IMG/VR virus record: IMGVR_UViG_3300026484_000087
Location: 1 to 64,000 of that record
Strand: one strand, 5' to 3'
Length of the DNA: 64,000 bases
Positions 7,731 through 62,255 of this stretch are shown piece by piece. How positions within the stretch are numbered: position 1 is the first letter of the stretch; each line of letters opens with the position of its first letter. A program made the position numbers and the translations under genes. The notes beneath the pieces were generated by a model, which searched no databases, was not told the DNA's origin, and saw nothing but the letters and a program-made list of their open reading frames with translations.

Positions 7731-7762
7731 GATACTGCCTAGTACCTACTTTAATAATATAT
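7731..7762 (-). promoter_or_regulatory. Conserved early-promoter/5'-hairpin element, copy 1
   Basis: - strand ATATATTATTAAAGTAGGTACTAGGCAGTATC just upstream of the gp74-like gene. Confidence 0.75.
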
Positions 7763-7840
7763 TGCTATAATATATTCCATATGATATCACAATTCATTTA
7801 TATATGAGCTGAGCAAAAAATATATAATAACCTACCATGG

Positions 7841-8008
7841 CTAAGTCCATGGTAAGTCATCAAGTGTTTCTTCACAAATATCCATATCCCAGTCACAATC
7901 AAATTCTACATCTGGTTTAAAATCCTTCTTATCAGCCCAGTCTTCACATGCACTAACAAAATCGCTAACGGTATCCTCACTAAATAAATCGCTAAAAAAA
8001 TCAAACAT
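7841..8008 (-). CDS. Unannotated 55-aa highly acidic protein
   Basis: MFDFFSDLFSEDTVSDFVSACEDWADKKDFKPDVEFDCDWDMDICEETLDDLPWT; ATG with AGGA/AGGT RBS right after the upstream stop; hairpin over its stop codon. Confidence 0.7.
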   Translation of the reverse strand: MFDFFSDLFSEDTVSDFVSACEDWADKKDFKPDVEFDCDWDMDICEETLDDLPWT

Positions 8009-8018
8009 TACCTATCCT

Positions 8019-8408
8019 TTATTTAAGTCTAATCATTTTTTTAATGTAATCTTCCATTAAATTATCACTATGAAGATTATTCTCTATAGCTAACCTGTTT
8101 ATGAATCTAAGATAATAATCATTGAATATATCAACATTATTAACTACTATATTGTTTGCATCCATACCATTATTAAGAGTGTTACATATCTCATCTAATG
8201 GCTTAGTTATCTTAACTGAATCAAATCTACAGTCATCCAGGTATATACTTATATCTAAATCATTTATGGTAAGAACATCTAATTTAGTTCTTAATGTTAG
8301 ATCTTTTAACTTCTTTTCTTTTATATCTTTAAATACTGATAATAGAAATTTAAGAGTTCTATCATATGTATAAAATCTTCCATCAAATTCACAACAATAT
8401 TCTTTCAT
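8019..8408 (-). CDS. Hypothetical protein
   Basis: ORF with RBS in an operon. Confidence 0.65.
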   Translation of the reverse strand: MKEYCCEFDGRFYTYDRTLKFLLSVFKDIKEKKLKDLTLRTKLDVLTINDLDISIYLDDCRFDSVKITKPLDEICNTLNNGMDANNIVVNNVDIFNDYYLRFINRLAIENNLHSDNLMEDYIKKMIRLK

Positions 8409-8411
8409 AAC

Positions 8412-9062
8412 CTATCCTTTAATTAAACCATCTCTTTTTAGTATAAAAAGCATTTCTTTTAACTCTACTTCAATATCATTAATTAGATTTAACTTCTTAT
8501 ATTCGTTTGGCTTTGTTTGCTTAAGTGCTACATTGATAGTAGATATTAAGAATAATATCTTTTCATGTACATTCAAACCAGCTACTTTACACTCTATAAA
8601 TCCCTTAAGTATTTTAACTATCTCTTTAAGTCTATCCTCAAATGCTGAGTACGCATTTATTGGCATTGACTCGTTGAGTTTCTTATTATATAACACAGCT
8701 TCTTTTATATCCCTATGGTATTTATAGAATTTACGTATAGTGTAGTTTGGATTAGAATCTACAAACTGATTTATTGGCATATCTATATTTATAACATAAA
8801 ATGTATGATACTTGTACATTTCATAATATATTTTTTCTTTATGTATTTCATAAGTAACCTCAACATTTTCTATTTTAAGATCAGCTGTTTTACCTGTCTT
8901 AATTAAATCTATCATTGGATTATGATTGTTCTCGGTTCTAACATTATTTAGTAAATAGAACTTATTATTAAGAACTATTGTTTTAACTCGCTTAAGATCT
9001 ATATTAGCCAAGTCTAATGTACCCTCAAATTTGTTTTTATTTTTTAAAAATAATAAGCCCAT
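8412..9062 (-). CDS. Hypothetical protein
   Basis: ORF with AAGGA RBS and upstream motif 2. Confidence 0.7.
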   Translation of the reverse strand: MGLLFLKNKNKFEGTLDLANIDLKRVKTIVLNNKFYLLNNVRTENNHNPMIDLIKTGKTADLKIENVEVTYEIHKEKIYYEMYKYHTFYVINIDMPINQFVDSNPNYTIRKFYKYHRDIKEAVLYNKKLNESMPINAYSAFEDRLKEIVKILKGFIECKVAGLNVHEKILFLISTINVALKQTKPNEYKKLNLINDIEVELKEMLFILKRDGLIKG

Positions 9063-9082
9063 TTTTTATATCCTTTTATTTA

Positions 9083-9110
9083 TCATTTAAATATGTTGGC
9101 AAAAAAAAAA
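9083..9110 (-). promoter_or_regulatory. Promoter-like motif 2 (T-tract, CCA-N9-AWTGA)
   Basis: - strand CCAACATATTTAAATGA; same spacing at 20121, 26745, 53942 and 56801. Confidence 0.5.
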
Positions 9111-9257
9111 GATATTAATAATAGTATATGTATGTGGTTTACCACGTACATATACCATACTATTTAAATGCAGTATTACAAGGACGCCTTCTACTTCATT
9201 GCATTTTTTGTTCTTTATACATAGCTTATTACACAGTACCCATTATAAACTTATAGG

Positions 9258-9887
9258 TTAAGCTGCACTTCCATTGCACCTAATCCTATAATACTCTTCA
9301 CATGGAGTTGTTATGCGTATAACAGGATCCCTTACAATGCATCCATCAACATTATCTGTTTTAGTCTTAAATTTACCAAATGGTAAGATGTAATTCAATG
9401 CTTCACTATCAATACATGTCATTTGGAACTTATAAGGCCTAATCTCTTTTGCACAATAAACATCATTCTTATATTTAACTATTAGGGTTTTTAAACCATT
9501 GGCACTTACAGCTAAACTATAAATACATAATGTAGCATTATCATCATATTCTAATAAGAAGTTACGAATGCCATTCTTTTCCATCTCATTAGCGGTTTCC
9601 ATACTTATAGCACAATATACCATTTCAGACATACTGCCCTCAAAGTGTTGATAAAAATCAACGATACATGGATAGCACGGTGGTAGCTTCTCTTTACTAT
9701 TGTCAACCAAACCATGATATTCAAATGGATGATATCCATGCAGTCTTTGAATATAGTTAAAAGCACGCTTAAGCCCCCTCTTATTTCTAATCAAGAGAGA
9801 TTCTAATCGTTGTAGATAATTATCACCATACGTAACGGTTGGACTTGTTAAAGCATTTTGATTACTAATATCTTTTACATTTCTCAT
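9258..9887 (-). CDS. Hypothetical protein
   Basis: 209-aa ORF with AAGGA RBS. Confidence 0.65.
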   Translation of the reverse strand: MRNVKDISNQNALTSPTVTYGDNYLQRLESLLIRNKRGLKRAFNYIQRLHGYHPFEYHGLVDNSKEKLPPCYPCIVDFYQHFEGSMSEMVYCAISMETANEMEKNGIRNFLLEYDDNATLCIYSLAVSANGLKTLIVKYKNDVYCAKEIRPYKFQMTCIDSEALNYILPFGKFKTKTDNVDGCIVRDPVIRITTPCEEYYRIRCNGSAA

Positions 9888-9898
9888 AACTTATCCTT

Positions 9899-10831
9899 TT
9901 ATACATTATGCATGACATCAGTATCTGATTTATGTACCATCTCAATACCAGCACAGTTATATAAACTATTAACTATTTCTAATGCCTTATCTTGTCCATA
10001 TGGAACTTCATCTCTATTTATAACCCTAGGTATATTAGTTGGATTCTCTGCAGTAAGTATGTTTTTATACATATTCTCATGTGCTTTAATAGAGGAACCT
10101 CTATCTTTAAGTTCTGCTAAGAACTCTTCACCAACATAACTTGCATATAGCCTAGACTCGGTTTCAGATAAAACCTTAGTGGCACTGTTTCTCCATGGCA
10201 ATCTATGTTTCTCTGCTTTAGATGTACTTGTAGGTAAACCAAAATGATTTACTTTAGCAGAAGCAGTACTTAACCATGTATCAGCAATCTTAGCCAACAT
10301 CATTATATATAGTGGAGCTATAATTATATCATCTTTAGATTCAACTACACCCTTAACTGTGTTAAATTTAATTTTATCAACAAGAGGTTTAAATCTAGAA
10401 TTATTTAACTCTTCTATAATCTTATAAGCTGGTTTTGAACCAAGTGCGTAATACACATAGAATTCTTTGTCAACTATTTCTTTTAAGATCTCTCTCTTTT
10501 GTGTTAAATTTGTAGCTTTATAAGCACTATACTGTTCTGTACCAACTATTTTTAGATATTCTAATACCGTATTAAATAAGCTATTAACGATATCGGAACT
10601 AAGACCATCTATAGTTGAATCAAGATCATCTAAGTCATCTATATCCATGATGCTATTAGATATCATACGTTTAACTTGTCTAGAAGACTTAGCAATATAT
10701 GCTTCATAAAGTCTACCTATATTCATACGAGAAATAGTAGAGGCTGGATCCGAAATAATATCAGCTCTAGTACCATCTTTATCAACTGGCATATCTTCAT
10801 CTTTTCTAATTTCACATACGATACTTTTTGC
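9899..10831 (-). CDS. nvRNAP beta C-terminal subunit, exon 2 (phiKZ gp73-like)
   Basis: AKSIV...DMPVD...ADIISDPASTISRMNIGRLYE matches RpoB conserved regions; no RBS or ATG of its own. Confidence 0.88.
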   Translation of the reverse strand, partial: AKSIVCEIRKDEDMPVDKDGTRADIISDPASTISRMNIGRLYEAYIAKSSRQVKRMISNSIMDIDDLDDLDSTIDGLSSDIVNSLFNTVLEYLKIVGTEQYSAYKATNLTQKREILKEIVDKEFYVYYALGSKPAYKIIEELNNSRFKPLVDKIKFNTVKGVVESKDDIIIAPLYIMMLAKIADTWLSTASAKVNHFGLPTSTSKAEKHRLPWRNSATKVLSETESRLYASYVGEEFLAELKDRGSSIKAHENMYKNILTAENPTNIPRVINRDEVPYGQDKALEIVNSLYNCAGIEMVHKSDTDVMHNV

Positions 10832-11516
10832 CTTGGTGTTCAAGTGTAACGCTACTTACACCCCGCGACTCTACTCGCTGCTCCTACCATTACAGTGGAG
10901 GACACAGTTTATAAACTGTGAACATTTTGAACCGACCATATCAATCCTCATCCATTGATGAGGCCCTAACGTTTCGGGTCCGCTTGGATCCCTACTCTGG
11001 AGTAACCAGATGGCCTGTGAACACATACTCTCCTTGTATTAAGGATCACTTTCGTGGTTTAAGGTACTTCGCTGCGTCGATTAGAGCCAGGTAATAGAGT
11101 TTTCACTATGCCTACAGTATCCTTCATTACGGTTGTAGGTATTACAGTATGTTTCCACCTGTAAGTAGTATCTATTACTTTTAACAGCTCCTCCCCGCTA
11201 TTAGAAAGGTTTCATATGTACCTCACGATACATACGGGCTATTTTACATTGATTAAAATAAATATTGTTTATATTCTTTGGGAGTTGCATCTCCTGATAA
11301 AGAATTAAGATGACTATGTGGCGTCTGCTGAAACTCTCCGTGTTCAGGGCATATTAAGGCTATATTCTTTTCACCATGTTTGATTTTAGCTCTCTCTATA
11401 AACCTAAGTCTTAACTTTTCTTTCAATTCATTCCTCCTTTCTAAAAATACCAATGCAATAGTACTTTTAATCTTTTTTATTTTAATCTGTAACCTCGTAT
11501 CCATTACAAGGACTTA
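10832..11516 (-). mobile_element. Group I self-splicing intron (IA-like) in the nvRNAP beta gene
   Basis: Exon ends in U (GGT|TAAG), intron ends in G (ACCAAG|GCA). Q-like AATCGACGCAGCGAAG, R-like GTTCACAGGCCATC and S-like GATATGGTCGG, with P7 GGCCAU/AUGGUC. Splicing restores YKLTDLSG-AKSIV. GC-rich island. Confidence 0.88.
11253..11504 (-). pseudogene. Degenerate intron-encoded homing endonuclease remnant (DUF723-like zinc module)
   Basis: FIERAKIKHG...ICPEHGEFQQTPHSHL; no second CxxC and no nuclease domain. Confidence 0.7.
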
Positions 11517-12731
11517 ACCACTAAGATCAGTCAGCTTATACCCTACGCCGGGTAAGTACCTATATTTAATAGTAAACTCTATTCTGTAAATATCCATTGG
11601 ATCATTTCTATAGATCTTCTTAATGTTTCTATCACCTTTTACAATATCAGCATCAGTAATAGCCATTGCGTTGACTAATAGTCTTGTAAACTTAGGACTA
11701 ACTTTGACATTATCATTTCTATATCTTTGTTTATGTTCATCAACTATATTATCGTATACATCAAGTATATCTTTATAATATTGAACTAAAGCTTTAGAAT
11801 ACTTTTTAACTAAACCATCGGTATTACTATAAATCTCTTTTTTACTTTTTGGAGTATGATAAACTTTAATATCTGATACTACTCCTGAACCATCTCTAAC
11901 ATACGTTACCTTATCGAACATAGGATTGAATTCACATATATCTTTAGCACTCATCAATGCTGGGGCTAACTCATCATCATAATCTCTTACGGCAACAATA
12001 GCACCAGACTTATGTATCTTCTCACCTATCTCTGGGAATGGCTTATAATTATCTTTATCGCCATACAGATTTAACATAAAACTATCTGTACCAAACTCAA
12101 CCGTTCTTTTCTCGAAGATCTCTATAGCCATTTTCTCTGCTGTACTCTCAGATATAACTATACCATCCTCAGCTGTTTCATTGATTGTCATCATACAGAT
12201 ATTTAGATTAGCACCAAACTTATATCCATTATTATCACTAACTGCTGGAGATGAAGCCAATACTGTACCCGCCTCAAGTACATCATTGTGTTGAACTTTA
12301 TCAAGTATATCATGATTCCATTTATATCTAAAACCAAAATAGTTATGCATGTTAGAGTTATATGGTAAATCTAGATAGCTAATCTCACCTGTCTTAAGAT
12401 CTTCATAGATAACAATAGCGTCAACCATATGATTAATACTGTTAATATCTATACCATTCTTATATCTAGGTATAATGGAAATTATTCTAGAATCATTAAC
12501 CAGCTTCTTATCAAATGTTTGTCTGCCTAGCTCTCTTTCGATACCAGACTGAATAATCTTCTCATCTCCATTAAGCAATGTTAATGCTTGTGACATATGT
12601 GAGGACAACATAAGTGACCTAGCAGCACTATTATGATTACAAAATGGGTTTACTGCTGTTATACTCGTTAACTCTGGTCTAAGTTTTACTTTAGCAAATG
12701 ATTCTTTTAACGTTATTTTATCACTTTTCAT
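11517..12731 (-). CDS. nvRNAP beta C-terminal subunit, exon 1 (phiKZ gp71-like)
   Basis: NPFCNHNSAARSLMLSSHMSQ, GANLN, EDGIVISES, GYKLTDLSG; start placed at ATG 12731 behind GGAGG. Confidence 0.88.
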
Positions 12732-12918
12732 TATTATCCTCCATTGTACAAGTATCATCGCATATACTTCTTGAATCGATATCCACCAAAATTAGATCTT
12801 TGAACATCATTTTATATTGTCCTTTTGTAGTTATATTCTCATAGATGTCTCGTTCATGCATATATGCAGATAACGTCCATACTAAAGCAATTGCTACTAA
12901 TACTCTTATTGCTTCCAT
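12721..12918 (-). CDS. Small membrane or secreted protein overlapping the start of the beta gene
   Basis: N-terminal hydrophobic segment; AAGGAG RBS; first gene after motif copy 2. Confidence 0.6.
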   Translation of the reverse strand: MEAIRVLVAIALVWTLSAYMHERDIYENITTKGQYKMMFKDLILVDIDSRSICDDTCTMEDNNEK

Positions 12919-12942
12919 CTTATTCTCCTTGGGTTATTTATT

Positions 12943-12974
12943 GATACTGCCTAGTACCTACTTTAATAATATAT
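12943..12974 (-). promoter_or_regulatory. Conserved early-promoter/5'-hairpin element, copy 2
   Basis: Identical to copies 1 and 7. Confidence 0.75.
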
Positions 12975-12979
12975 AATTA

Positions 12980-13264
12980 TTAAACGTTTGGTTCATAACG
13001 ACGTATACCTACTATTGGAACATTACATTCGTCATCAGTATCTTTTGTTAAATTAATGCCAATTATCTCCTTGACATTAAGGTGTTTCTTTAATTGTTTA
13101 TATACTTCATTAGCATTCTTACAATTCACCTGTTCAAAATTATTTATATCGTCTTCATCATTTATCTGTACGATAGATACGACTTTGCCGTCTACATATA
13201 TTTCTTTAACTAAATCAAAATTTATAGACTCATTACCAGTTATTGCTGGAACTTCTATCCACAT
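12980..13264 (-). CDS. Hypothetical protein
   Basis: ORF with AAGGAG RBS. Confidence 0.6.
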   Translation of the reverse strand: MWIEVPAITGNESINFDLVKEIYVDGKVVSIVQINDEDDINNFEQVNCKNANEVYKQLKKHLNVKEIIGINLTKDTDDECNVPIVGIRRYEPNV

Positions 13265-13276
13265 AAGATCTCCTTA

Positions 13277-13504: not shown

Positions 13505-13505
13505 C

Positions 13506-14207: not shown

Positions 14208-14239
14208 GATACTGCCTAGTATCTACTTTAATAATATAT
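14208..14239 (-). promoter_or_regulatory. Conserved early-promoter/5'-hairpin element, copy 3
   Basis: ATATATTATTAAAGTAGATACTAGGCAGTATC (fully Watson-Crick stem variant). Confidence 0.75.
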
Positions 14240-14252
14240 GGTTATTAAAATC

Positions 14253-14516
14253 TTATTCATTATACTTAGTATAATCTGGTTTACCATCACGATATAACTC
14301 TTCTATACCTTTCCTATCATAAACACTAACCACATCTATAGCATTATACCTATTGGTTTCTTTTTCCCATAATCTATTAACTAAGTCCAATATTTCTATA
14401 AAGCATTTAGTATTAACCTGGAATTCATAAGGTAACTCTAAGATACTGGTTAAATATTTTATATCCTGACATTCTTTATCTTCAGCCAATGCCACTACAG
14501 CTATAATCATATTCAT
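14253..14516 (-). CDS. Hypothetical protein
   Basis: ORF. Confidence 0.55.
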   Translation of the reverse strand: MNMIIAVVALAEDKECQDIKYLTSILELPYEFQVNTKCFIEILDLVNRLWEKETNRYNAIDVVSVYDRKGIEELYRDGKPDYTKYNE

Positions 14517-16408: not shown

Positions 16409-17878
16409 TTATACGATTTGACTTAGATTCATAATTTGACTAAAGTCTTCAACAACATTATTGTATGTGTTCTCATCACCAATCATACTTGTATATAAAC
16501 TATTACAAAATGTTGGTAATCTATATACTACTGGTGCTTGACCATTAATACTAACTGCAATAGTAGTATCGCCTAAAACATCTGCATGTATGAATATCTC
16601 TACACCAAGTAAGTTGTTTTTAGTTATAGAGTTAACTACAAGAGCTTTAAATTTACTCATAAATCTTTCTACATACATACTAACGTCAATACCATGTATA
16701 AATGATTTAACATTAGATACGGCATCAACAACTTCACTGTTTGGAGTCATGTTAGTAATACTAAAATCGATACTAGACAACATCTCATCTACAAGTAAAC
16801 TAGAAACAGCTTCACTTATAGTTGTTGCAATTGTTCCCTCAATGCTAGTAGCAGATAAATCTGCTGTTACATCTGTATCTAAAATAGTGGCATTCTGCTT
16901 AAACATTGGAGTATTATTATCAACAAGTATAAGTTTACTCTCAATATCTGGCTGAAGCTTAGCAAGTGCATTTAATGTAAACTCAACCGTTACCAGATCC
17001 CCAGTAATACTACTAAGTGCCTGAACAAGAGGTACTTCAGATAAATTATTCTCATTAAGATCAGAACTTGCCACACCGAATATATCATTACTCGTATGTC
17101 CTATCTCTGCCATATTATTACCAAGTATGAACGAGTTAATCACACTACTAACATGCATTGACCCAACAGAGTTTAATCTTTTACTTTCCAATGGAACAGC
17201 ACCATATAAATTCCTGGTATTATTAATGGGTACATTATTGTTACCCATCATATTATTTACCTCCATACCGCCTGCTACATCTTTAGGACGCATTAATCTA
17301 TGTGTTCTAGTAGTATCTTCAACGCTATAAGATCTATTAAAAGAATCATACAGTACATTGAAACTAGAAAGAACTCTAGTATTAACGATTCCTTGTAAAT
17401 TTACAGTTCTAACAACATTTGTTATACTATTTATATACATAGACATATTTGGGTCTATCCTACCACTCATAGTTGGATCATGGTATTCACTATATCCCTG
17501 AATATAACTAATAGTTAAAGCTTGTGTGTTCGGATCATGCGATTCAACTTCCATAAGGAATCTTAATCTAACTGTACCCCAACCATTAGCAATATTAATT
17601 CTCTCTGTAGGTATATCAGATATTTTCATAAGATCTGGAACGCTGTTTGCTAAAGAAACCGCATTTACTCTACCACCAGTTGCCACTTGCTGACCTATAA
17701 TATTTTCAAGATTATTAAGTGTACCAGAGTTTACATTCATTTCGAATGGTCTACGATAAATATCATTGTATTGTTTTGTTGGCACAAAAAGTATCTTTGT
17801 AATATTTAAGTCTATAGTGTTCATGTATTGCCCAGCATACATATTATTTAAAGAATTTTGTTGGAAATTATTTTGCAT
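16409..17878 (-). CDS. picA: Probable phage-nucleus protein import factor (phiKZ gp69/PicA/Imp1-like)
   Basis: Directly after the gp68-like gene; size and IANGW...RLRF motif fit the family as recalled; no search run. Confidence 0.6.
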   Translation of the reverse strand: MQNNFQQNSLNNMYAGQYMNTIDLNITKILFVPTKQYNDIYRRPFEMNVNSGTLNNLENIIGQQVATGGRVNAVSLANSVPDLMKISDIPTERINIANGWGTVRLRFLMEVESHDPNTQALTISYIQGYSEYHDPTMSGRIDPNMSMYINSITNVVRTVNLQGIVNTRVLSSFNVLYDSFNRSYSVEDTTRTHRLMRPKDVAGGMEVNNMMGNNNVPINNTRNLYGAVPLESKRLNSVGSMHVSSVINSFILGNNMAEIGHTSNDIFGVASSDLNENNLSEVPLVQALSSITGDLVTVEFTLNALAKLQPDIESKLILVDNNTPMFKQNATILDTDVTADLSATSIEGTIATTISEAVSSLLVDEMLSSIDFSITNMTPNSEVVDAVSNVKSFIHGIDVSMYVERFMSKFKALVVNSITKNNLLGVEIFIHADVLGDTTIAVSINGQAPVVYRLPTFCNSLYTSMIGDENTYNNVVEDFSQIMNLSQIV

Positions 17879-17891
17879 ATATTGTCCTTTT

Positions 17892-19442
17892 TTATTTGTT
17901 TAAGTGTATTATTAAATTAGCCAACTGTATTTTTAAATCAGAAGGCACTAACATTGTTTGCGAAGCGTTATCTTTCACTTCTAATATATATTCACTTGGT
18001 GCAGTAAATATCCATCTTTGTTTATAGAACTCATCAGCCATATTATTAGCAGATGTTTCAGCAACATTAACTTCACGGTTAGCAGTAGCTGTAGTAACGA
18101 TAACTTTTTTATAAGGAAATATAGTATCTAAGGTATCTTTATGTTCCTTAGTTATTCTACTCTTATTAGTAGTAAAGTTAATTACAACTGTATCGTCTTG
18201 TTCAGCCTGCAACGATGTAAGCAATAAAGCTAAATATTTAAATCCATGTGTCCATAGATAGGCAAATGCCAATGCCAATGAACTTATGATCGCATCTAAC
18301 TTAACATATTCTAAACTTCTTGGATCTATAACTTCTTTAAGTACCCAACCCAATAATGTTATCTGCACTCTAGTTAATGTTCCATGATGTAGTTTTGTTG
18401 TAAATGACAATGCATCACCATACACCTTAAGATCCAAATTCTTACATAACTTTAATGGGTTATCTCTAAGATTTTCTAATGACCATTCTAATTCAACAAC
18501 TGAACCAGCTGGTAAATTAGATGTTATTCTATAGCTCTCCAATATACTTTCTTGATCGCCGTCACCACTCTCAGTATCTACCATTGACTTCTTAGAACGT
18601 ATAGCATTTGATGTATCACCTTTAACTTTTAATTTGTTATTAACAAAATTATATGTTCTAGTAATGATATGTTTGTTCTCTGTATCATCAAGTATTGTAG
18701 CCATAGCTATCTTTTGCATCATAACTATACTTAAAACCCATACAACCATTTCATCAGATGGAATTCTTTTCTCAATTATACGAATCAAAGACTCATCTTC
18801 AGATCTATTTACTGATTCTATAACTTTATCCACTAAACCATATAACTTTATATAAGGTTCAGATTCAGATATTTTATGTTGGGTTATAAAGTTAAATAGA
18901 ATATAGTGATTATGTATCTTACCTAACTCACTATTATTCATAAAACCAAATTGACCTATTGGACCAATAATACTTTTAAGAACTTGTACAAAAGCTATAA
19001 GTTGCAAATAATCTGTTTTTGTATAGGTTTGTACTCTAGTACCTAACCCATCTTCAACCATCTTATTATCGAACTCATCTGGCATAGATCTAAGTGCCTG
19101 ATACTTATAAACATTTTTTATAAAATGATAAACATCTTCTAAATCCATTAATTCTAATATACCATTAACCAATTCATAAGGTAGGGGCATTATCTCTACC
19201 CTACCAATATTATCAAATAGTATTTCTTCAGCTTCAATGTACTTATTCATAAGTGCTGTTTTAAATGCATCACCTTTATAATCAAGGTATGCATGAAGTA
19301 AGACAAACTGCTTATCTGAATCTATTTCATCTTTGTTTCTCTTATTTACTATAGTACTTATGTTAAAATTTATAGTTACATTATTATAACTAATTTCTAT
19401 TTCTAACGGTGCACTGTTATATAAGTTATTTAACTTAAACAT
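17892..19442 (-). CDS. nvRNAP promoter-specificity (sigma-like) subunit, phiKZ gp68-like
   Basis: 516 aa; position in the gp65-gp75 block; RVQTYTKTDY and SILESYRI motifs; preceded by the same element as the other nvRNAP genes. Confidence 0.7.
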   Translation of the reverse strand: MFKLNNLYNSAPLEIEISYNNVTINFNISTIVNKRNKDEIDSDKQFVLLHAYLDYKGDAFKTALMNKYIEAEEILFDNIGRVEIMPLPYELVNGILELMDLEDVYHFIKNVYKYQALRSMPDEFDNKMVEDGLGTRVQTYTKTDYLQLIAFVQVLKSIIGPIGQFGFMNNSELGKIHNHYILFNFITQHKISESEPYIKLYGLVDKVIESVNRSEDESLIRIIEKRIPSDEMVVWVLSIVMMQKIAMATILDDTENKHIITRTYNFVNNKLKVKGDTSNAIRSKKSMVDTESGDGDQESILESYRITSNLPAGSVVELEWSLENLRDNPLKLCKNLDLKVYGDALSFTTKLHHGTLTRVQITLLGWVLKEVIDPRSLEYVKLDAIISSLALAFAYLWTHGFKYLALLLTSLQAEQDDTVVINFTTNKSRITKEHKDTLDTIFPYKKVIVTTATANREVNVAETSANNMADEFYKQRWIFTAPSEYILEVKDNASQTMLVPSDLKIQLANLIIHLNK

Positions 19443-19464: not shown

Positions 19465-19495
19465 GATACTGCCTGTATCTAAGTAAATAATATAT
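19465..19495 (-). promoter_or_regulatory. Conserved early-promoter/5'-hairpin element, copy 4
   Basis: ATATATTATTTACTTAGATACAGGCAGTATC. Confidence 0.7.
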
Positions 19496-19531
19496 TGCTA
19501 TAATATATTTAAAACATAGAGTAAAGAGTAT

Positions 19532-25563: not shown

Positions 25564-25595
25564 AATACTACCAAGTATCTAATTAAATAATATAT
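25564..25595 (-). promoter_or_regulatory. Conserved early-promoter/5'-hairpin element, copy 5 (diverged)
   Basis: ATATATTATTTAATTAGATACTTGGTAGTATT. Confidence 0.6.
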
Positions 25596-25597
25596 AC

Positions 25598-26722
25598 TTA
25601 AATTATACTTGACAACTCTTCGTTAGCCAACGCATTTAATTCCTCATTGTCATTTATAGTATCAAGTTCTTTATTAATAAGTTCTTTAATATTACTACTT
25701 GTTATGCTTATGTTAACTATAGGATCATACTTAAGAACATTATCAGTTACTTTCTTTTCATTGGTATCTTTCATATGTTTGTTACTAAAGTTATAATCTT
25801 TAAATCTTTTATATACTTCCAGCAATGATTTATAAATAGGATTAAACTTATCAATAACTAAACGTATATGCGAATTTATCGGATACTTCTTTAATTCTAT
25901 TGTTAAGATATTTATAAGCTCATTAACATCTTCTGTATTAACTGATATGGATTTAAATATACATGCGTTATCATTAACTAAGAACTTATAAGTATTATCA
26001 CCGTTTGGATCAAGTGCTATAAGCATGGCACCTTTATCCTCTTCTTCATTATGGGCTAACCTGTCAAATGATCCCTGTGCAAGTATTCTCTTATAGATAG
26101 ACATACTATGTATGTGTCCTATTGATATATAATATCTAACAAGTTTAAGATATTCAAATTCATCATGCATACTAGGAAGTTCAATAACTGGTATTTGATA
26201 TTTAAAAGCTCCATGCATTACGGCTATGTCTACTTTATCTATACCCTTATCATCCATTAAAGTTTTAACATCCTTAAGTACTTTTTCAGACTCATGGTGT
26301 ATTTCATCTGGTACATACAATATATCTAAATTAAAACCAGACAATGTTTCTATGTATATATTATCTATATATTTAAAATCAACATTTATTTTTAATTTTT
26401 TAATAATTACATTAAGAACATTTGCCTGTCTAGAATCATGACTTGGTGTACCCTCTAATAGTCTTAAGATTATGTTATTCTTTTTACAATAATAGACTAA
26501 ATTAGTTAACCACTCTGTAGCAAGTATATTATCCGTAGATGATGATGATAATAATCTATCAAAGATATCTCCTGCTATTACGATCATATCTAAACCAGAT
26601 AAAACAGTATTATATTTTAAGAAAAAACTATTTAAATTATTTATTATATTTTCTGTCTTATTTTTATTACTACCAAAATGGATATCGCTTAGAACTAAAT
26701 ATTTTATCTTTTTTGTTAACAT
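25598..26722 (-). CDS. sbcD: SbcD/Mre11-family metallophosphoesterase nuclease
   Basis: SDIH, GDIFD, GTPSHD, MHG, GHIH, GSFDRL. Confidence 0.88.
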   Translation of the reverse strand: MLTKKIKYLVLSDIHFGSNKNKTENIINNLNSFFLKYNTVLSGLDMIVIAGDIFDRLLSSSSTDNILATEWLTNLVYYCKKNNIILRLLEGTPSHDSRQANVLNVIIKKLKINVDFKYIDNIYIETLSGFNLDILYVPDEIHHESEKVLKDVKTLMDDKGIDKVDIAVMHGAFKYQIPVIELPSMHDEFEYLKLVRYYISIGHIHSMSIYKRILAQGSFDRLAHNEEEDKGAMLIALDPNGDNTYKFLVNDNACIFKSISVNTEDVNELINILTIELKKYPINSHIRLVIDKFNPIYKSLLEVYKRFKDYNFSNKHMKDTNEKKVTDNVLKYDPIVNISITSSNIKELINKELDTINDNEELNALANEELSSII

Positions 26723-48708: not shown

Positions 48709-50376
48709 ATGTCAAAAATAATAGGAAGAGAATGTAAGTTCGTAATACATTTACCAGAAGTAAAAGGTTTAAGAGACGATACACATTTTATAAAAGAAGT
48801 TTTACACTATGATGACAAAACAACTAAAATAAATTTACAGACTATAAAGAATTTTAAAAGACCATTTTATGTAACCAAACCCCATTTCCAAAACCATAAA
48901 CAAAAGAAAGAATTTGAATTAGAAAGCAGAGTTAATACATACTATTCTACACAATCTAGACTTGCGAATAATATAGCCGTTAGAATAGGTAAAAATGGTT
49001 ATTTTAAAAACAGTATGAGGGACGTTGTAGATAATCAATTTTTATATGGCGTAGATATAAAATCAACATCTATAATTAAGAAAATTTATCAAGAGAAATA
49101 TCCTGACTGCAATACTGAGAGTACAGTATGTGCACTTGATATTGAAAATGATATCGATACTGGAGTAATATCTATTATATCTATAGCAATGTATGATAAA
49201 TTATATACAGTAATAAACAAATCCTTAGTAGATGGAATAAAAGACATAGATAGTAAACTAAAAGATCTTTATGATAAATGGATGCCCGATACAGATATAA
49301 TAAAAGGTTGTACAAAAAGAGAATACGATATATTTGATAACGAATTAGAACTTATTATAAATATATTTAAAAAGGTACATGAATGGCAACCTGACTTCTT
49401 AGCTATATGGAATATCAATTACGATTTACCAGTAATGATGAGAGTGCTAGATAAATATGGAGTTAAACATGAAGATGTATTCTCTGATCCATCGCTACCT
49501 GATAAGTTTAAATATTTTAGATATAAAGAAGGGCAAAAGCAAAGAGTAACTGAGTCTGGTAGAGTTATGGCGATTAACCCAGAACAACAATGGCATTATG
49601 CTTATTGTACGTCAAGTTTTATTTTTATAGACGCCATGTGTGCATATAGTTACGTTAGAGTTGGTCAAGCAGCTGTTCCTGGTGGTTATGGTTTAGATAA
49701 TGTTTTAAAACATAATAAGATAAATACTAAATTGAAATTTGATGATGATAATAAATACAAAGGTGCTGACTGGCATAAATATATGGTTAAAAACAAACCA
49801 TTAGAATATATTATATACAACCAATATGATATCCTATCTATGTTAGAATTAGAAAATAAAACAAAAGATTTAACTACATCTTTACCTATCCTTGCTGGTA
49901 TATCCGATTTTGATATATTTAATAGTGGACCTAAAAAGATAGTTGATGGTTTACATTTCTTCTACTTACAGAATAAAAGAGTTCTTGGTACTAAACCTAG
50001 TAAGATAGTTGATGATAAGGTTTTAGGATTAGATAATTGGATTATAACGCTTCCAGCATATAGACTTATAGATAACGGTATAAAATGTATAGCTGAGGAT
50101 GGAGATATCCAAACTAATATAAGATGTCATGTATACGACATAGATGCTGTTAGTTCATATCCTAGTGATGGTGTTGCATGTAATATATCTAAACAAACAA
50201 CAAAAAAAGAAATAGTTTCCATAAAAGGAAAAAGAAAAGAAGACTTCATGTATGATAATATAAACTTATTTAGTGGAGCAGTTAATAGTGTAGAGTACTG
50301 TACAAGCATGTTCAATTTTCCGCAGTTAATAGATCTAGCAGAAGAAATAAAAAAAGAAGTTACTATAGAGGAATAA
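48709..50376 (+). CDS. Split family-B DNA polymerase: exonuclease half with motif A (phiKZ gp82-like)
   Basis: ALDIE (ExoI), WNINYD (ExoII), YNQYD (ExoIII), DIDAVSSYPS (PolB motif A); motifs B and C absent. Confidence 0.85.
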   Translation: MSKIIGRECKFVIHLPEVKGLRDDTHFIKEVLHYDDKTTKINLQTIKNFKRPFYVTKPHFQNHKQKKEFELESRVNTYYSTQSRLANNIAVRIGKNGYFKNSMRDVVDNQFLYGVDIKSTSIIKKIYQEKYPDCNTESTVCALDIENDIDTGVISIISIAMYDKLYTVINKSLVDGIKDIDSKLKDLYDKWMPDTDIIKGCTKREYDIFDNELELIINIFKKVHEWQPDFLAIWNINYDLPVMMRVLDKYGVKHEDVFSDPSLPDKFKYFRYKEGQKQRVTESGRVMAINPEQQWHYAYCTSSFIFIDAMCAYSYVRVGQAAVPGGYGLDNVLKHNKINTKLKFDDDNKYKGADWHKYMVKNKPLEYIIYNQYDILSMLELENKTKDLTTSLPILAGISDFDIFNSGPKKIVDGLHFFYLQNKRVLGTKPSKIVDDKVLGLDNWIITLPAYRLIDNGIKCIAEDGDIQTNIRCHVYDIDAVSSYPSDGVACNISKQTTKKEIVSIKGKRKEDFMYDNINLFSGAVNSVEYCTSMFNFPQLIDLAEEIKKEVTIEE

Positions 50377-52220: not shown

Positions 52221-52280
52221 AATATATCCTTTTGTTGTTAGAGGTACCATTCGAGGGCACTTAACTGTATATTATAGTTT

Positions 52281-52312
52281 AATACTGTCACGTATCTACA
52301 TATATTATATAT
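52281..52312 (-). promoter_or_regulatory. Conserved early-promoter/5'-hairpin element, copy 6 (diverged)
   Basis: ATATATAATATATGTAGATACGTGACAGTATT. Confidence 0.55.
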
Positions 52313-52339
52313 GGTTGAAAAAAAATGGAAACTCAATAT

Positions 52340-52373
52340 TTACATACATTAGCAATTAAGCTAATGTATGTAA
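52340..52373 (-). terminator. Intrinsic terminator-like hairpin
   Basis: 14-bp stem, 6-nt loop. Confidence 0.65.
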
Positions 52374-56159: not shown

Positions 56160-56174
56160 ATTTTACTTCCTTAT

Positions 56175-56783: not shown

Positions 56784-56954
56784 GCGTCCTCCTTTTCTTA
56801 TCATTTATTTACCATGGTTGAAAAAAGTATAAGAATATACAGTTCTCTATATTAATAATATATGCTTAAATAAAATTTGATTACATAAAAAATGTAAATG
56901 ATTAATATTATTGATAACAGACATATTAGTCTAATTATACAAAAGGATAAAAAA

Positions 56955-57506: not shown

Positions 57507-57519
57507 GAAAGGATGATTT

Positions 57520-59133: not shown

Positions 59134-59582
59134 TAGAACGCAAACTAGAAAGTAACAACCTTGAATATATAGATAACATTATACAAAATATAAGTATAGT
59201 GTTATCTAGCCCTGAGAGTGCTATTCTTTTATCTGACGTTTATGATGACATAAATGGTCTTAAGGGCAATAGTGAAGCCGATAAACTATTCGGCAGCGTT
59301 TTATACAGAGAAGAGGAAGACCTGGTTGTTTGTACTAGATTAGATAGCCTTATAAAGATTTACAGTTCTTACAATATAAGAGAATTCTTTGGACTTAGTC
59401 TAAATGAATTTATGGATTTGCCTGGATGGAAAATAAATAGTCTTACAGAAAATGCAATAGAAATAATGGAAGAAAAAGAAAAAGAATTAGCTGAACTTCA
59501 GGAAGAAGTTGAAAATGATTCATCTAACATAGAAAATAGTATGGAGAGAACAATGTATGATATAGGAGAAACACGTGGATAA
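59064..59582 (+). CDS. phiKZ gp76-like ORF, probably expressed as a frameshift extension of 57520-59133
   Basis: YNIREFFGLSLNEFMDLP motif; first possible start (GTG 59199) has no RBS. Confidence 0.65.
   Translation, partial: SFFRPKHSQNKQNFRKKPGREHLVERKLESNNLEYIDNIIQNISIVLSSPESAILLSDVYDDINGLKGNSEADKLFGSVLYREEEDLVVCTRLDSLIKIYSSYNIREFFGLSLNEFMDLPGWKINSLTENAIEIMEEKEKELAELQEEVENDSSNIENSMERTMYDIGETRG
59067..59073 (+). other. Candidate programmed -1 ribosomal frameshift site T TTT TTC
   Basis: X XXY YYZ heptamer in the correct phase; the -1 frame opens at 59064 and runs without a stop to 59582. Confidence 0.65.
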
Positions 59583-60273
59583 TGATATTATAAACGGGGT
59601 ATACATAGAACTTGATACATTAATGGATACCAGATTAAGTTTATTATTCGATATAGATAAGGATATGATAGTACCTTACATAACAAGTGGTAAGTATCAT
59701 AATCGCTATATTGATGAATTTGGTTATTTGTCTGTAAAAGTATTTAGAACTATTTATAAAAAAAGAAATGCTAATGTTCTAAATAACCCTAGTCCAACTA
59801 TGATAATGGACCTATTGTCTGACTATTGTTACGAAGCTCTGCATTCTAGTAAAACATTTAATAATGGTAAACCAATAAATGTATTCTTAAATCTGTACCC
59901 GTACAATCTAACTGAAGAAAGCAAAGAGCTTATAAGAATGGGTATGGTTAATAATCTCAAATCTGAAGTTAATGTTGAGTTACTATTTAAACCTTACGAT
60001 GAAATTACTCCTGACTTCATAAATGATGAAATAGGGTTGATGATAATGTATGATGGATTATCTTGGGTGGAACACCATATGCTTAATAAAAACTTAATTA
60101 AGACATCTTTACCAAATGTTACACTATTAACTCCTATGCTTCTACATAGAAAACTTATGATTAAAGAAAGTGAGTTAGGAACGTTCTTTGAAGATGTAGA
60201 AAAAAACATGGCTATGCTAATAGGTATAAATTTTATACCTACCAAATTCTTCTCTGTTAAAAAAGAAAAATAA
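59575..60273 (+). CDS. Conserved core protein (phiKZ gp59-like, HAD-like N-terminus)
   Basis: YIELDTLMDTRL and NLYPYNL motifs; GTG start with AGGAG. Confidence 0.65.
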   Translation: MDNDIINGVYIELDTLMDTRLSLLFDIDKDMIVPYITSGKYHNRYIDEFGYLSVKVFRTIYKKRNANVLNNPSPTMIMDLLSDYCYEALHSSKTFNNGKPINVFLNLYPYNLTEESKELIRMGMVNNLKSEVNVELLFKPYDEITPDFINDEIGLMIMYDGLSWVEHHMLNKNLIKTSLPNVTLLTPMLLHRKLMIKESELGTFFEDVEKNMAMLIGINFIPTKFFSVKKEK

Positions 60274-60307
60274 CTATACTATGTAGCAATGCTACATAGT
60301 ATAGTTA
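60271..60307. terminator. Putative bidirectional terminator
   Basis: 18-bp perfect stem overlapping both stop codons. Confidence 0.7.
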
Positions 60308-60487
60308 ACCTGCTGAGTGTATTAGACTTAAAAGTATTAACCATGTTATATACATGCCTATAAAGGCCCCTACAACATAAAATGATATACCTAATAAGAA
60401 TATCATATCACGATTCTTTATAGCCGTATAGAGCATTAGAATGAGCATTAGAGACAATATTATTGTCGTAGCTATTAAAACAAACAT
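60305..60487 (-). CDS. Small two-TM membrane protein
   Basis: Two hydrophobic segments. Confidence 0.6.
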   Translation of the reverse strand: MFVLIATTIILSLMLILMLYTAIKNRDMIFLLGISFYVVGAFIGMYITWLILLSLIHSAG

Positions 60488-60488
60488 T

Positions 60489-60695
60489 TTAATACTTACT
60501 TAAAATCTCTAATAATAAAGCTTCTGCTGTTTCTTCAACAACATCTTCTATAGTAAGAAGAGCTTCTAGCTCTCCTATAAAATCTTTATTATTATCATCT
60601 AACAATTTAAATACTTTTAATCTAGTTTCATCATTTATATTTGGATGGATATGCTCATCTATAAATATATCCATTCTTTCTTTAGTAACCATCAT
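60489..60695 (-). CDS. Small acidic hypothetical protein
   Basis: AAGGAG RBS. Confidence 0.6.
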   Translation of the reverse strand: MMVTKERMDIFIDEHIHPNINDETRLKVFKLLDDNNKDFIGELEALLTIEDVVEETAEALLLEILSKY

Positions 60696-60702
60696 TACTC
60701 CT

Positions 60703-62199
60703 TTAAGTTACAATACTATCAGCATCTACTTCTATTTTTCTCATACTAGCTATAATATTAAGACTATCTATGTTAGTATCATTCTTATCATAAAGATAGT
60801 TAGTTATAGTTGCAATAGTTGGTTTAGGTAGATTTAATAAACCACTAACTTCATTAATGGAATTTCTACCAGGGATTGAATATGCAGGATCTAATGTATG
60901 TGCTTTATCACACATATTATTATCTGCCAATATAATACAGTTTAACTCATCGCCATCAAAGTCAGCATTCATAGCAGCAGTTATAAGAATAGACATACTA
61001 ATGGTATAATCCATCGGATCTGTCTTAAACTTATTAATAAAAACTCTTTGAGCACTACCCTGGTGCAAACTTGGATTTCTATGTAGAATTATAGCTATTT
61101 TACCTTTAGTATAACTATCTCTAAGTAACTCGTTTAAAGCTTTATCAACTATAGGATCATAATTGTTAACTGCGTATATAAGTAAGTTACTTGCTACCTT
61201 AAAGGTCATATCATATCTATTACAAAGAATATTAAGAAGATGCGGTCTAAATGCGGTAACGCCTATCGCCCATGGTACCTCTACTTCATCATACTTATGT
61301 GGTCCAGGAATTGATGTAATTACGGCTCTAAAGGTAAAGTGACCTCTACCACCATAGATATGTTTTCTAAAGATACCTGGTTTACTAGATAGGTAAACCT
61401 TGTTGTAATACTGATATATTCCAGATAAGTCACTAATGGTTCTGGCCATAGCATTTGATTTCTTATTAGGTGTTTGTTTTGGATCATTAACCATCTTAAC
61501 AAATTGAAGAACTGTATCTATTACATCAGCTATACCTAAATTTGTATAGTTACCTTTACTAGTATTTTCGATAATGAACAGTTTCTTGTTAACTATAGGA
61601 AGCCAGTAGCTATATATTAAATCTTTACTATTCCTATATAGATTTAAAAGACCTTCAATTATCTCTTTCTTTCTAGGTGTTTTAAATGTAGAGTAATTCT
61701 GAAGAAAGATAAGAATGTTCTCTATATTGTCAACTAAGAAAGGATAACTTCTCTCAAAGTTTGGAAGAGTATTCTTAATAGCTATTAAGAAATCTGGTAT
61801 CTCGGTACCAGGATTATAACTAGTATCGGATAACCAACGCATACAATCTATCTTTTTACCCATAACTGTACGCAACATTAGCCAAAAGTGGGGACTCATG
61901 AACTTGGGCATATCGTCGATAGCATGTAACCATAATAATGGATCTGTTTTATCCTGAAATTCTCTTACAGTAGTAGAACATTTAGGACAAATTTTACCAC
62001 TAAGATAACCGCCTTTCATATGTCCACAATCACATGCTGGGACCATTGAAATAGTGTTATCATCATATACTGTTAAAAGTGCATTTGTTATTCTCTCTCT
62101 ATCTTCTATAGAATAGTATTTAACATCATTAAGTACTATTTTATCACCTGTTGTTTCTTTATAATAAGTGTCAAGATTTTTTAATCTTTGAAATATCAT
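60703..62199 (-). CDS. nvRNAP beta' N-terminal catalytic subunit (phiKZ gp55-like)
   Basis: CDC...CPKC zinc finger, KPGIFRKHIYGGR, RAVITS, RNPSL, NADFDGD catalytic motif. Confidence 0.93.
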   Translation of the reverse strand: MIFQRLKNLDTYYKETTGDKIVLNDVKYYSIEDRERITNALLTVYDDNTISMVPACDCGHMKGGYLSGKICPKCSTTVREFQDKTDPLLWLHAIDDMPKFMSPHFWLMLRTVMGKKIDCMRWLSDTSYNPGTEIPDFLIAIKNTLPNFERSYPFLVDNIENILIFLQNYSTFKTPRKKEIIEGLLNLYRNSKDLIYSYWLPIVNKKLFIIENTSKGNYTNLGIADVIDTVLQFVKMVNDPKQTPNKKSNAMARTISDLSGIYQYYNKVYLSSKPGIFRKHIYGGRGHFTFRAVITSIPGPHKYDEVEVPWAIGVTAFRPHLLNILCNRYDMTFKVASNLLIYAVNNYDPIVDKALNELLRDSYTKGKIAIILHRNPSLHQGSAQRVFINKFKTDPMDYTISMSILITAAMNADFDGDELNCIILADNNMCDKAHTLDPAYSIPGRNSINEVSGLLNLPKPTIATITNYLYDKNDTNIDSLNIIASMRKIEVDADSIVT

Positions 62200-62223
62200 C
62201 TTATTCTCCTTGGGTTATTTATT

Positions 62224-62255
62224 GATACTGCCTAGTACCTACTTTAATAATATAT
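62224..62255 (-). promoter_or_regulatory. Conserved early-promoter/5'-hairpin element, copy 7
   Basis: Identical to copies 1 and 2. Confidence 0.75.

Follow-up and report, generated by a model that had tools for sequence, protein, structure and literature searches.

Background and comparison with described systems

The early promoters of the Bacillus phage AR9/PBS1, which are assigned to the virion RNA polymerase (vRNAP) and are active without new protein synthesis, have the form AAATATATATTAT-(6N)-G+1 (Lavysh et al. 2017, PMC5312081). Dozens of copies precede early genes, nvRNAP genes among them, and the phage has split vRNAP and nvRNAP genes. Early promoters of phiKZ and 201phi2-1 are of the TATATTAC type, with conservation at -10, -20 and -30 (PMC11512511) and a start 6 nt after the core (PMC5312081), and in 201phi2-1 not all nvRNAP genes have nearby early promoters. 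The early promoters of coliphage N4 are read by an injected single-subunit virion RNA polymerase that recognises a short hairpin formed in the template DNA upstream of the start. At the RNA level, stem-loops within a few nucleotides of the 5' end, largely free in sequence but critical in position, stabilise mRNAs such as those with the E. coli ompA and papA leaders (Emory, Bouvet and Belasco 1992, cited in PMC3997798), and the B. subtilis small RNA (sRNA) RoxS pairs with the extreme 5' end of yflS and blocks RNase J1 (PMC5419742).

We examined a promoter-hairpin element in the window, i.e. the first 64 kb (64,000 nucleotides) of a 206-kb genome (hereafter G000) of an uncultured jumbo phage from a hydrothermal-vent metagenome. 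The genome is about 77% complete and contains a chimallin homolog, nvRNAP genes and a vRNAP beta'-like gene (phrog_3148, E=0). Its promoters share with AR9 the identical ATATATTAT core, a T at -1 and a predicted purine start 7 nt after the core. As in AR9, dozens of copies precede early genes, nvRNAP genes among them, and the phage has split vRNAP and nvRNAP genes. The promoters differ in that the usual predicted start is A instead of G, an upstream GTTTYNA box is present, and all copies lie on one strand. The proteins are only about 25-30% identical to the nearest known jumbo-phage proteins. With phiKZ/201phi2-1 the phage shares an AT-rich multi-block promoter, a chimallin gene and gp68-gp74-like synteny of the nvRNAP genes, but the core ends in T and not in C.

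The repeated element is present in seven copies in the window

An earlier note had described seven copies on the - strand of a promoter followed by a hairpin, preceding all four nvRNAP subunit genes of the window and three other genes. This observation was confirmed. A search for ATATATTAT-N5-TAGRTAC with up to 2 mismatches gave 8 hits against 1.58 expected, and none of 100 shuffles reached 8 hits. All hits were on the - strand and they included all seven copies. Each of these is followed by GRUAC(U)-loop-(A)GUAUY, and the stem variants and G.U pairs were as described in the note, with GGUACU/AGUAUC at 7762, 12974 and 62255, and GAUAC/GUAUU at 25595 and 52312.

The copy at 7731-7797 (-) precedes the gp74-like nvRNAP beta'-like subunit gene (5676-7706, -; phrog_3015). 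It has its core at 7754-7762, a predicted transcription start site (TSS) at 7747, a hairpin at 7731-7746 (GGUACU/AGUAUC, one G.U pair), an upstream tandem core at 7767-7775 and a leader of 41 nt. The copy at 12943-13000 (-; core 12966-12974, predicted TSS 12959, hairpin 12943-12958) leads a unit consisting of a 65-aa ORF and the split gp71/73-like nvRNAP beta-like gene (9899-12758, -). Of the two pieces of this gene, 11514-12758 matches phrog_3295 positions 9-402 and 9899-10843 matches positions 404-695, while the insert between them holds an 83-aa endonuclease-like ORF (11253-11504) and a weak group I intron match (10912-11265). The copy at 14208-14265 (-; core 14231-14239, predicted TSS 14224, hairpin 14208-14223) lies before a 180-aa gene of unknown function.

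The copy at 19465-19521 (-; core 19487-19495, predicted TSS 19480, hairpin 19465-19479 with 5 bp and the loop AGGCA, upstream tandem core 19500-19508) lies before the gp68-like (17892-19442) and gp69-like (16409-17878) genes, which together span 16409-19442 (-) and have the same order as in phiKZ. The assignment of the gp68-like gene rests on its position next to a PHIKZ069-like gene and on one phage hit annotated as an nvRNAP subunit. The copy at 25564-25621 (-; core 25587-25595, predicted TSS 25580) has a hairpin at 25564-25579 (GAUACU/AGUAUU, G.U pair at the base, loop UUGGUA) and lies before a phrog_3229 gene. The copy at 52237-52340 (-) belongs to a sub-class, here termed (b), with the upstream box GAGTTTCCATTTTTTTTCAACC, the core ATATATAAT at 52304-52312, a predicted TSS at 52297 and a hairpin at 52281-52296; its 77-nt leader holds a second conserved hairpin at 52237-52265. 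The copy at 62224-62281 (-; core 62247-62255, predicted TSS 62240, hairpin 62224-62239) lies before the gp55-like nvRNAP beta'-like N-terminal subunit gene (60703-62199, -; phrog_2987, Pfam RNA_pol_Rpb1_2). The 59 nt at 12916-12974 are identical to those at 62197-62255. The gene assignments of the note thus hold, as judged from PHROG and Pfam profile hits and gene order.

The eighth hit, at 56820-56889 (-), is a promoter of the same class with a core at 56855-56863, a predicted TSS at 56848 and a different, non-canonical 5' hairpin at 56820-56847 (-5.7 kcal/mol). It lies before a phrog_3254 gene.

The element belongs to a general class of predicted early promoters

A matrix scan of the 206-kb genome identified about 29 copies of the promoter, with the core 9-mer exact or with one mismatch, all on one strand and nearly all intergenic, with leaders mostly 38-77 nt long. 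A covariance model found 17 copies with the canonical hairpin. The seven copies are therefore 7 of 17 canonical copies and of about 29 promoters of this class. These promoters precede mostly unknown early genes, the chimallin gene and a noncoding RNA. The homolog of the nuclear shell protein chimallin (62738-64000, -, within the window) runs on to 64651, and its own promoter, whose core ends at 64738, has a strong non-canonical 5' hairpin (-9.0 kcal/mol). The view of the note that the element marks nvRNAP transcription units was therefore not supported. All five nvRNAP genes lie in units led by promoters of this class, but the canonical hairpin leads only four of these. The fifth gene, gp123-like, had been proposed in advance as a test of this view. 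It is located at G000:189460-191154 and is the second gene of a unit led by promoters 192534 and 192780, which belong to the same class but have other hairpins, and the covariance model found no canonical copy before it. The prediction thus failed in its strict form.

The core and its spacing are identical to those of the 41 mapped AR9 early promoters. Position 6N+1 is A or G at all sites and is preceded by T, as in AR9. A 186-nt metatranscriptome contig covers positions 8579-8764 of sequence L065 and ends 1 nt from the TSS predicted for promoter 192780; however, it should be noted that this is a single contig without strand information from a related strain, and that the mRNA starts are predicted throughout. 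One could argue that these promoters are read by a host sigma-70-type polymerase and that the hairpins are ordinary leader structure, as the geometry resembles TTTCNA-N16-TAT(T/A)AT with a start 7 nt downstream and sub-class (b) has a perfect TATAAT. We consider this unlikely in view of the near-invariance of the 9-10 nt core, which is unlike cellular promoters, its identity to the AR9 core, the presence of a vRNAP gene, and the location of all copies on one strand.

The 5' hairpin appears to be selected in the RNA

With the TSS inferred from AR9, the hairpin would lie at the very 5' end of the RNA. Among the sites of this phage and its relatives, stems begin at +1 (7 sites), +2 (25), +3 (7) or +4 (4). 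Of the 29 sites, 28 have a 5'-anchored hairpin of -2.5 kcal/mol or better, with a mean of -4.84 against -1.82 in shuffles, whereas in 131 other 5'UTR windows only 27% reach that value (Mann-Whitney U-test p-value of 4e-9). Twelve promoters carry unrelated, non-canonical hairpins at the same place, and these alone differ from shuffles with a Fisher p-value of 8.5e-5; eight sites in relatives give 6.7e-4. When sites were selected on the promoter plus the 5' arm only, 38 of 41 had the 3' arm. The core stem is paired in 190 of 190 cells, and all 10 one-sided changes are G.U or U.G, i.e. wobble-type on the coding strand, as the note had proposed. Comparison of orthologous promoters in related contigs (L115, L027 and L013) showed compensatory or wobble changes for 192534 versus L115 (A-U to G-C), 165754 versus L027 and 84226 versus L013, and the chimallin promoters of two phages carry unrelated hairpins at the same place. 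In addition, the sense strand folds better than the antisense strand (p=0.004). No hairpin enrichment was observed at 22 AR9 sites (-1.58 versus -1.27 in shuffles; 2 of 22 sites at p≤0.05), and six strong phiKZ promoters showed no consistent 5' hairpin. No Rfam family matched at the gathering score anywhere in the 206 kb.

However, the canonical hairpin is weak (-2.8 to -5.9 kcal/mol at 37 C), the canonical class shows no double compensatory change, and its covariation score is not above that of shuffles (84/500). Moreover, the stem and loop sequences are conserved, which could also be explained by a sequence-specific reader, be it a polymerase or a protein. We therefore considered whether the stretch from +1 to +17 could be a DNA-level promoter part, either an initially transcribed or downstream element read by the vRNAP or a hairpin extruded in DNA as in N4, the RNA fold being a by-product. 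The conservation of the stem and part of the loop as sequence in 17 copies and in relatives would fit this view, and since AR9 early transcripts also tend to start with GAUA/GAAU, the 5' arm may be constrained by initiation. Nevertheless, this possibility seems unlikely, because twelve promoters with the same core have entirely different sequences after +2 and still form hairpins, stems range from 5 to 21 bp and loops from 3 to 13 nt, and the changes are wobble-type and favour the sense strand. Also, the hairpin lies at +1 to +45, downstream of the predicted start, while N4 hairpins are centred upstream of it and have a fixed short loop.

Even less likely is that the inverted repeat GATAC-N4-7-GTATC represents a double-stranded DNA operator for a dimeric regulator turning early promoters off or on. 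An inverted repeat overlapping the predicted start at many co-regulated promoters has a geometry typical of operators, but the arm spacing varies from 3 to 7 nt, the changes make G.T pairs on one strand only, the sense/antisense asymmetry argues against a symmetric DNA site, and the non-canonical promoters keep a hairpin but not the sequence.

A noncoding RNA is complementary to most copies of the canonical hairpin

One promoter of this class, 192780, is predicted to drive a noncoding RNA of about 200 nt encoded at G000:192551-192765, which represents a new finding. The promoter has a score of 29.4, a terminator followed by a T-run is located at L065:8597-8568, and the fold z-score is -3.95. 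No ORF is conserved, and indels occur in L115. The metatranscriptome contig mentioned above covers this RNA (L065:8579-8764), while the neighbouring early genes have no coverage. The sequence GAUACUGCC of this putative sRNA is the exact complement of the loop plus 3' arm (GGCAGUAUC) of 13 leaders, and all 13 GGCAGTATC sites in the sense orientation lie in early leaders. In related genomes (G001-G004), the syntenic sRNA of G001 and a noncoding RNA of G002 carry GAUACUACC, which is complementary to 13 promoter-linked GGUAGUAUC leaders in G001-G004, and no GGC form is present there. The predicted duplex energies are -13.8 or -11.8 kcal/mol for matched pairs and -7.1 kcal/mol for the mismatched pair. 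It should be noted that the match comprises only 9 nt and was noticed post hoc, that only three to four lineages are available, that the seed is only moderately accessible in the sRNA fold of this phage (P unpaired 0.40), and that a crude duplex-energy scan did not separate leaders from random windows.

An alternative is that the hairpin is an RNA operator for a phage or host protein, such as a translational repressor, a regulator of nvRNAP subunit stoichiometry or an export or localisation tag, and that it is not mainly a nuclease shield and the sRNA match is incidental. In favour of this are the conserved GGY loop and the A before the 3' arm, the identical 59-nt promoter-leader cassette of two nvRNAP units, and the fact that the phage encodes chimallin, so that its mRNAs must cross compartments. 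However, no candidate protein was identified, and the chimallin unit, the gp123-like unit and ten others have unrelated hairpins, so one sequence-specific protein cannot serve them all. In addition, the loop nucleotide co-varies with the sRNA seed across lineages, which a protein model does not predict. We therefore regard this alternative as doubtful.

Implications for early gene expression

Altogether, the interpretation of the earlier note was partly supported: the element is of the early-promoter type and its hairpin appears to be under selection as RNA, but it is not specific to nvRNAP genes. Sequence statistics and comparison show that the first 15-45 bases after the predicted start form a stem-loop, beginning at +1 to +4, that appears to be kept by selection on the RNA strand, whatever its sequence. 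What we infer from AR9 is that a bipartite promoter (a GTTTYNA-like box, about 13 nt, then ATATATTAT) is read by the injected vRNAP, which would start at the purine 7 nt after the core. The functions are likewise inferred, including the nuclease shield, protein binding and export tag proposed in the note, to which our data add a complementary sRNA as a different possible partner. With moderate confidence, we propose that the 5'-terminal stem-loop most likely shields the 5' end of early mRNAs from 5'-end-dependent decay of the pyrophosphohydrolase, RNase E or RNase J type. The twelve unrelated hairpins at the same position match the sequence-independent stabilisers of ompA and papA. Those, however, are single-gene cases in cellular mRNAs with experimentally shown stabilisation, whereas here the structure is a class-wide feature tied to one promoter type and any stabilisation is by analogy.

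In this view, the canonical version (GAUAC(U)-NNGGYA-GUAUC), with 17 copies, is in addition the docking site of a conserved early sRNA, whose GAUACUGCC would pair with the loop and 3' arm and thereby open or replace the hairpin. This resembles the RoxS-yflS case, in which a trans-acting sRNA pairs with the first nucleotides of a leader and so controls the access of 5'-end-dependent nucleases. RoxS is a host sRNA with individual targets, while here a phage sRNA would address a repeated leader hairpin, the pairing being only inferred and its effect possibly stabilising or destabilising. The complementarity suggests an RNA-guided control of early genes, which would give the phage one handle on a regulon of about 15 early transcripts.

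The general early promoter and its hairpin

The pattern ATATATTAT-N5-TAGRTAC was found 8 times in the window at up to 2 mismatches, always on the - strand, whereas 1.58 occurrences were expected and none of 100 shuffles reached 8. The seven copies listed in the earlier note were all recovered, together with one more at 56843-56863, and the observation on which that note was based is therefore confirmed. An alignment showed the conserved core, a conserved TAG and GRTAC(T)-loop-(A)GTATY, and the stem variants and G.U pairs that the note had described were present. A second ATATATTAT core lies 13 nt upstream of the main core, in the place of the upstream box, at the gp74-like (7767-7775) and gp68-like (19500-19508) promoters, and it is conserved in related loci (L145, L082 and L103).

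The window is the first 64 kb of a single contig of 206,244 bp with 29.8% G+C (Ga0256837_1000004, here G000), which derives from a hydrothermal-vent metagenome and is rated about 77% complete by CheckV. The contig belongs to a jumbo phage. The gp74-like and gp55-like nvRNAP genes were identified by PHROG and Pfam, and the gp68-like gene lies next to a PHIKZ069-like gene. The gp71/73-like nvRNAP beta gene is split into two halves of phrog_3295. The insert between them (10844-11513, - strand) holds an 83-aa endonuclease-like ORF (11253-11504, phrog_681) and a sub-threshold group I intron match (RF00028, 25 bits, E=4.8e-4, 10912-11265), which is the same arrangement as in the phiKZ gene 71/72/73 region. 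The phage also has a vRNAP beta'-like gene (phrog_3148), a major head protein, a tail sheath and a chimallin (phage nucleus shell) homolog at 62738-64000, the gene for which continues to 64651. The nearest database phages are only about 25-31% identical in the beta' subunit. No tRNA and, at gathering scores, no Rfam family was detected anywhere in the 206 kb.

A position matrix built from clear copies found about 29 sites in the genome, all on the - strand. Of the 29 sites, 27 are intergenic, while the other two (93074 and 151773) overlap the end of the preceding ORF. Each site is followed by a - strand gene after a leader of mostly 38-77 nt, and most of the first genes downstream have no known function. 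Unusually long, structured leaders of 111-295 nt lie behind promoters 165754, 123729, 93074 and 162243 (G000:165444-165739, 123586-123714, 92923-93059 and 162117-162228, - strand), and these may hold further noncoding RNAs or small ORFs. A covariance model of the canonical promoter-proximal hairpin found 17 copies, 7 of which are in the window. Two sub-classes could be distinguished: class (a) consists of a GTTTYNA-like box, about 13 nt and then ATATATTATT, and class (b) of GAGTTTCCAYTTWTTTTCAACC followed by ATATATAAT. A second conserved hairpin, followed by CUCUAAC, was observed in long leaders of 72-77 nt, namely at 52237-52265 (- strand), in the G000 leaders of promoters 113349 and 158220, and in the locus L025. 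It shows a covariation series of GUAUC/GAUAC, GUAUC/GGUAC and GUGCC/GGUAC.

The core and spacing equal those of the AR9 early promoter AAATATATATTAT-(6N)-G+1, which was mapped at 41 sites by dRNA-seq, with selected promoters validated by primer extension, and was assigned to the virion RNAP (PMC5312081). Transcription in phiKZ and phiR1-37 also starts 6 nt after the respective cores (PMC5312081). In the present phage, position 6N+1 is always a purine preceded by T, as in AR9. The predicted start is therefore the A of TAG, which would place the beginning of the canonical hairpin at +2. None of the RNA runs examined covered early mRNAs, and this start thus remains a prediction for the mRNAs.

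We also considered whether strand separates early from late genes. All of the roughly 29 early promoters are on the - strand, and the 51 + strand genes, which include two DNA polymerase parts, RNR, a helicase, the tail sheath and SbcC, have none. However, the late-looking genes for the major head protein and vRNAP beta' share the - strand with early genes, whereas the DNA polymerase and RNR genes are on the + strand, and this idea was therefore rejected. Two separate DNA-polymerase-family genes (phrog_3011 and phrog_2927; 48709-50376 and G000:98782-100896, + strand) lie 48 kb apart.

Relation of the element to the nvRNAP genes

The interpretation offered in the earlier note, that the element marks every nvRNAP transcription unit, was only partly supported. 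All five nvRNAP genes lie behind promoters of this class, but the element does not mark them specifically. The gp123-like gene, before which an absence of the element had been named beforehand as counting against the note, was not detected with the AR9 beta-N subunit, but it was found with phiKZ gp123 at G000:189460-191154 (E=1e-36). It is the second gene of a unit led by promoters 192534 and 192780, the hairpins of which are different, and the covariance model found no canonical copy in front of this gene. The claim thus fails for the canonical element, though not for the promoter class. The beta catalytic part (Pfam Rpb2_6), which might have been expected outside the window, is inside it at 9899-10843. 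Two different nvRNAP transcription units are preceded by an identical 59-nt cassette comprising core, hairpin, leader, Shine-Dalgarno sequence and ATG (12916-12974 and 62197-62255), while the sequences upstream of the two cassettes differ.

Evidence for selection on the hairpin

A profile of hairpins starting exactly at a given position was confounded, because the AT-rich core pairs with downstream A/T runs, and we therefore examined hairpins anchored within the predicted transcript only. Of 29 predicted transcripts, 28 have a hairpin of -2.5 kcal/mol or better that begins at +1 to +4. The mean is -4.84, as compared to -1.82 in dinucleotide shuffles. In 131 other 5'UTR windows of the same genome the mean is -1.84 and 27% reach the -2.5 kcal/mol value (MWU p=4e-9). 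Twelve promoters have quite different sequences after +2 and still form hairpins of -4 to -15 kcal/mol (Fisher p=8.5e-5), and eight such sites in related vent contigs gave a p-value of 6.7e-4. However, it should be noted that the canonical stems reach only -2.8 to -5.9 kcal/mol at 37 C, and that all positions refer to predicted rather than mapped mRNA starts.

To extend these observations to relatives, IMG/VR was searched for related loci. Searches with single nvRNAP proteins found no relatives, and a search with the major head protein found only the related contig G001, but pattern scans brought in the related contigs G001-G004 from IMG/VR and several Ga02568xx contigs. When sites were selected on promoter plus 5' arm alone, 38 of 41 distinct sites had the 3' arm. 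In the core stem, 190 of 190 cells pair, and the 10 one-sided changes are all G.U or U.G. There is, however, no double change, and covariation in the canonical stem did not exceed that in shuffles (84/500). The structural argument therefore rests on the non-canonical copies, the orthologues and the strand asymmetry. Among orthologous promoters, the comparison of 192534 with the close relative L115 showed an A-U pair becoming G-C, with two further wobble changes, the comparison of 165754 with locus L027 showed three pairing-preserving changes in the 3' arm and one break at the base, and the comparison of 84226 with locus L013 showed an A-U/G.U swap. Unrelated hairpins at the same place were found in 108346 and locus L012, and in the chimallin promoters of this phage and of G002. 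Since choosing the segments on the sense strand biases a comparison of strands, both strands were optimised independently, and the sense strand folded better (-5.36 versus -4.40; 25 sites against 12; p=0.004).

Such hairpins are not a general trait of promoters of this type. AR9 gave -1.58 versus -1.27 in shuffles (22 sites), phiKZ gave -3.1 versus -2.3 (6 sites), and the more distant relative G005 showed only weak enrichment. In addition, contigs of an unrelated metagenome (Ga0157363/Ga0157364; loci L069, L072, L094, L097, L104, L108, L109, L111, L126 and L137) hold many copies of the same core plus AGGTAC, preceded by a T-rich box and followed by a different conserved sequence of ~60 nt without the GTATC arm. 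This is probably another phage lineage with its own leader element.

A candidate small RNA complementary to the canonical leaders

Promoter 192780 lies just after the major head gene and its terminator. It drives about 200 nt without a conserved ORF, ending in a terminator hairpin and a T-run, and this candidate early small RNA is encoded at G000:192551-192765 (- strand; L065:8551-8765), outside the window. Its fold is well below shuffles (z=-3.95). The stretch around GAUACUGCC is unpaired in the centroid structure, but its ensemble accessibility is moderate (0.40). GAUACUGCC is the exact complement of GGCAGUAUC, the loop plus 3' arm of the canonical hairpin. All 13 sense-strand occurrences of this 9-mer in the genome are in early leaders, and two more leaders pair through wobble. 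It should be noted, however, that this match was noticed post hoc, and that RNAduplex of the whole sRNA against leaders, a crude scan that ignores intramolecular structure, did not beat random windows.

G001 has a syntenic, homologous but much shorter sRNA of about 95 nt (L010:12012-12111), which shares the same 5' start, seed position and terminator, but the seed of which is GAUACUACC. G002 has a non-syntenic noncoding RNA of about 225 nt (L001:2418-2645) behind a promoter of this class, also with GAUACUACC. G001-G004 hold 13 promoter-linked GGUAGUAUC leaders and no GGC form, whereas L115 keeps GCC in the seed and GGC in its leader. The number of lineages on which this co-variation rests is small. 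The predicted duplexes are -13.8 (GCC:GGC), -11.8 (GCC:GGU and ACC:GGU) and -7.1 (ACC:GGC) kcal/mol, and opening the hairpin costs 4-6 kcal/mol.

A biofilm metatranscriptome (run X5) contains a 186-nt contig covering L065:8579-8764, which is the sRNA from 1 nt after its predicted start, although the contig carries no strand information. The flanking early genes are uncovered and the head gene is covered. This shows that the RNA exists as a discrete species in a related strain, and it supports the start-site rule.

Interpretation

Our analysis establishes the promoter class with its copy number and distribution, a hairpin at the predicted 5' end, RNA-type conservation of this hairpin, and the existence of the sRNA and its seed/loop co-variation. 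By contrast, transcription by the virion RNAP is inferred from the identity with AR9, and the start at core+7, the protection of the 5' end by the stem, as for known 5'-terminal stem-loops (references in PMC3997798), the docking of the sRNA on the canonical hairpin and any regulatory effect of such docking are likewise inferences. Docking could be destabilising, by exposing the 5' arm, but it could also be protective, as when RoxS pairs at the 5' end of yflS (PMC5419742).

Early promoters of the AR9/phiKZ type are already known, and the promoter described here adds to them. The AR9 paper does not contain the words 'hairpin' or 'stem-loop', and the 201phi2-1 paper mentions them only for terminators and sRNAs, not for the 5' ends of early transcripts. 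A wider full-text search, judged by titles alone, turned up no paper pointing to such hairpins. Phage sRNAs are known, for example the 11 found in 201phi2-1 with unknown targets, but an sRNA aimed at a repeated leader of the phage's own early mRNAs did not turn up in our literature searches.

A more far-reaching reading, which we put forward only tentatively and consider somewhat less likely than not, is that this jumbo phage encodes an early small RNA whose 9-nt seed is complementary to the loop and 3' arm of a hairpin placed at the 5' end of most of its early mRNAs, including four of the five nvRNAP units. In this view, one RNA could switch the stability or translation of a whole early regulon by opening or replacing the 5' hairpin, while transcripts that must escape this control, i.e. 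chimallin, the gp123-like unit and the sRNA itself, carry other hairpins. This would be an RNA-guided counterpart of protein-based early-mRNA shut-off, such as that by T4 RegB.

How jumbo phages time and balance early gene expression after the injected polymerase starts work is poorly understood, and no post-transcriptional layer is known for their early mRNAs. The presence of a chimallin homolog in this genome extends chimallin-type phages to AT-rich hydrothermal-vent communities. The class-wide 5' stem-loop tied to inferred virion-polymerase promoters gives a testable rule for early mRNA protection and, in practice, the promoter-plus-hairpin rule lets early genes of uncultured relatives be called from sequence alone. 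The matching phage sRNA, in turn, would be a simple, transferable mechanism for co-regulating polymerase subunits and other early genes.
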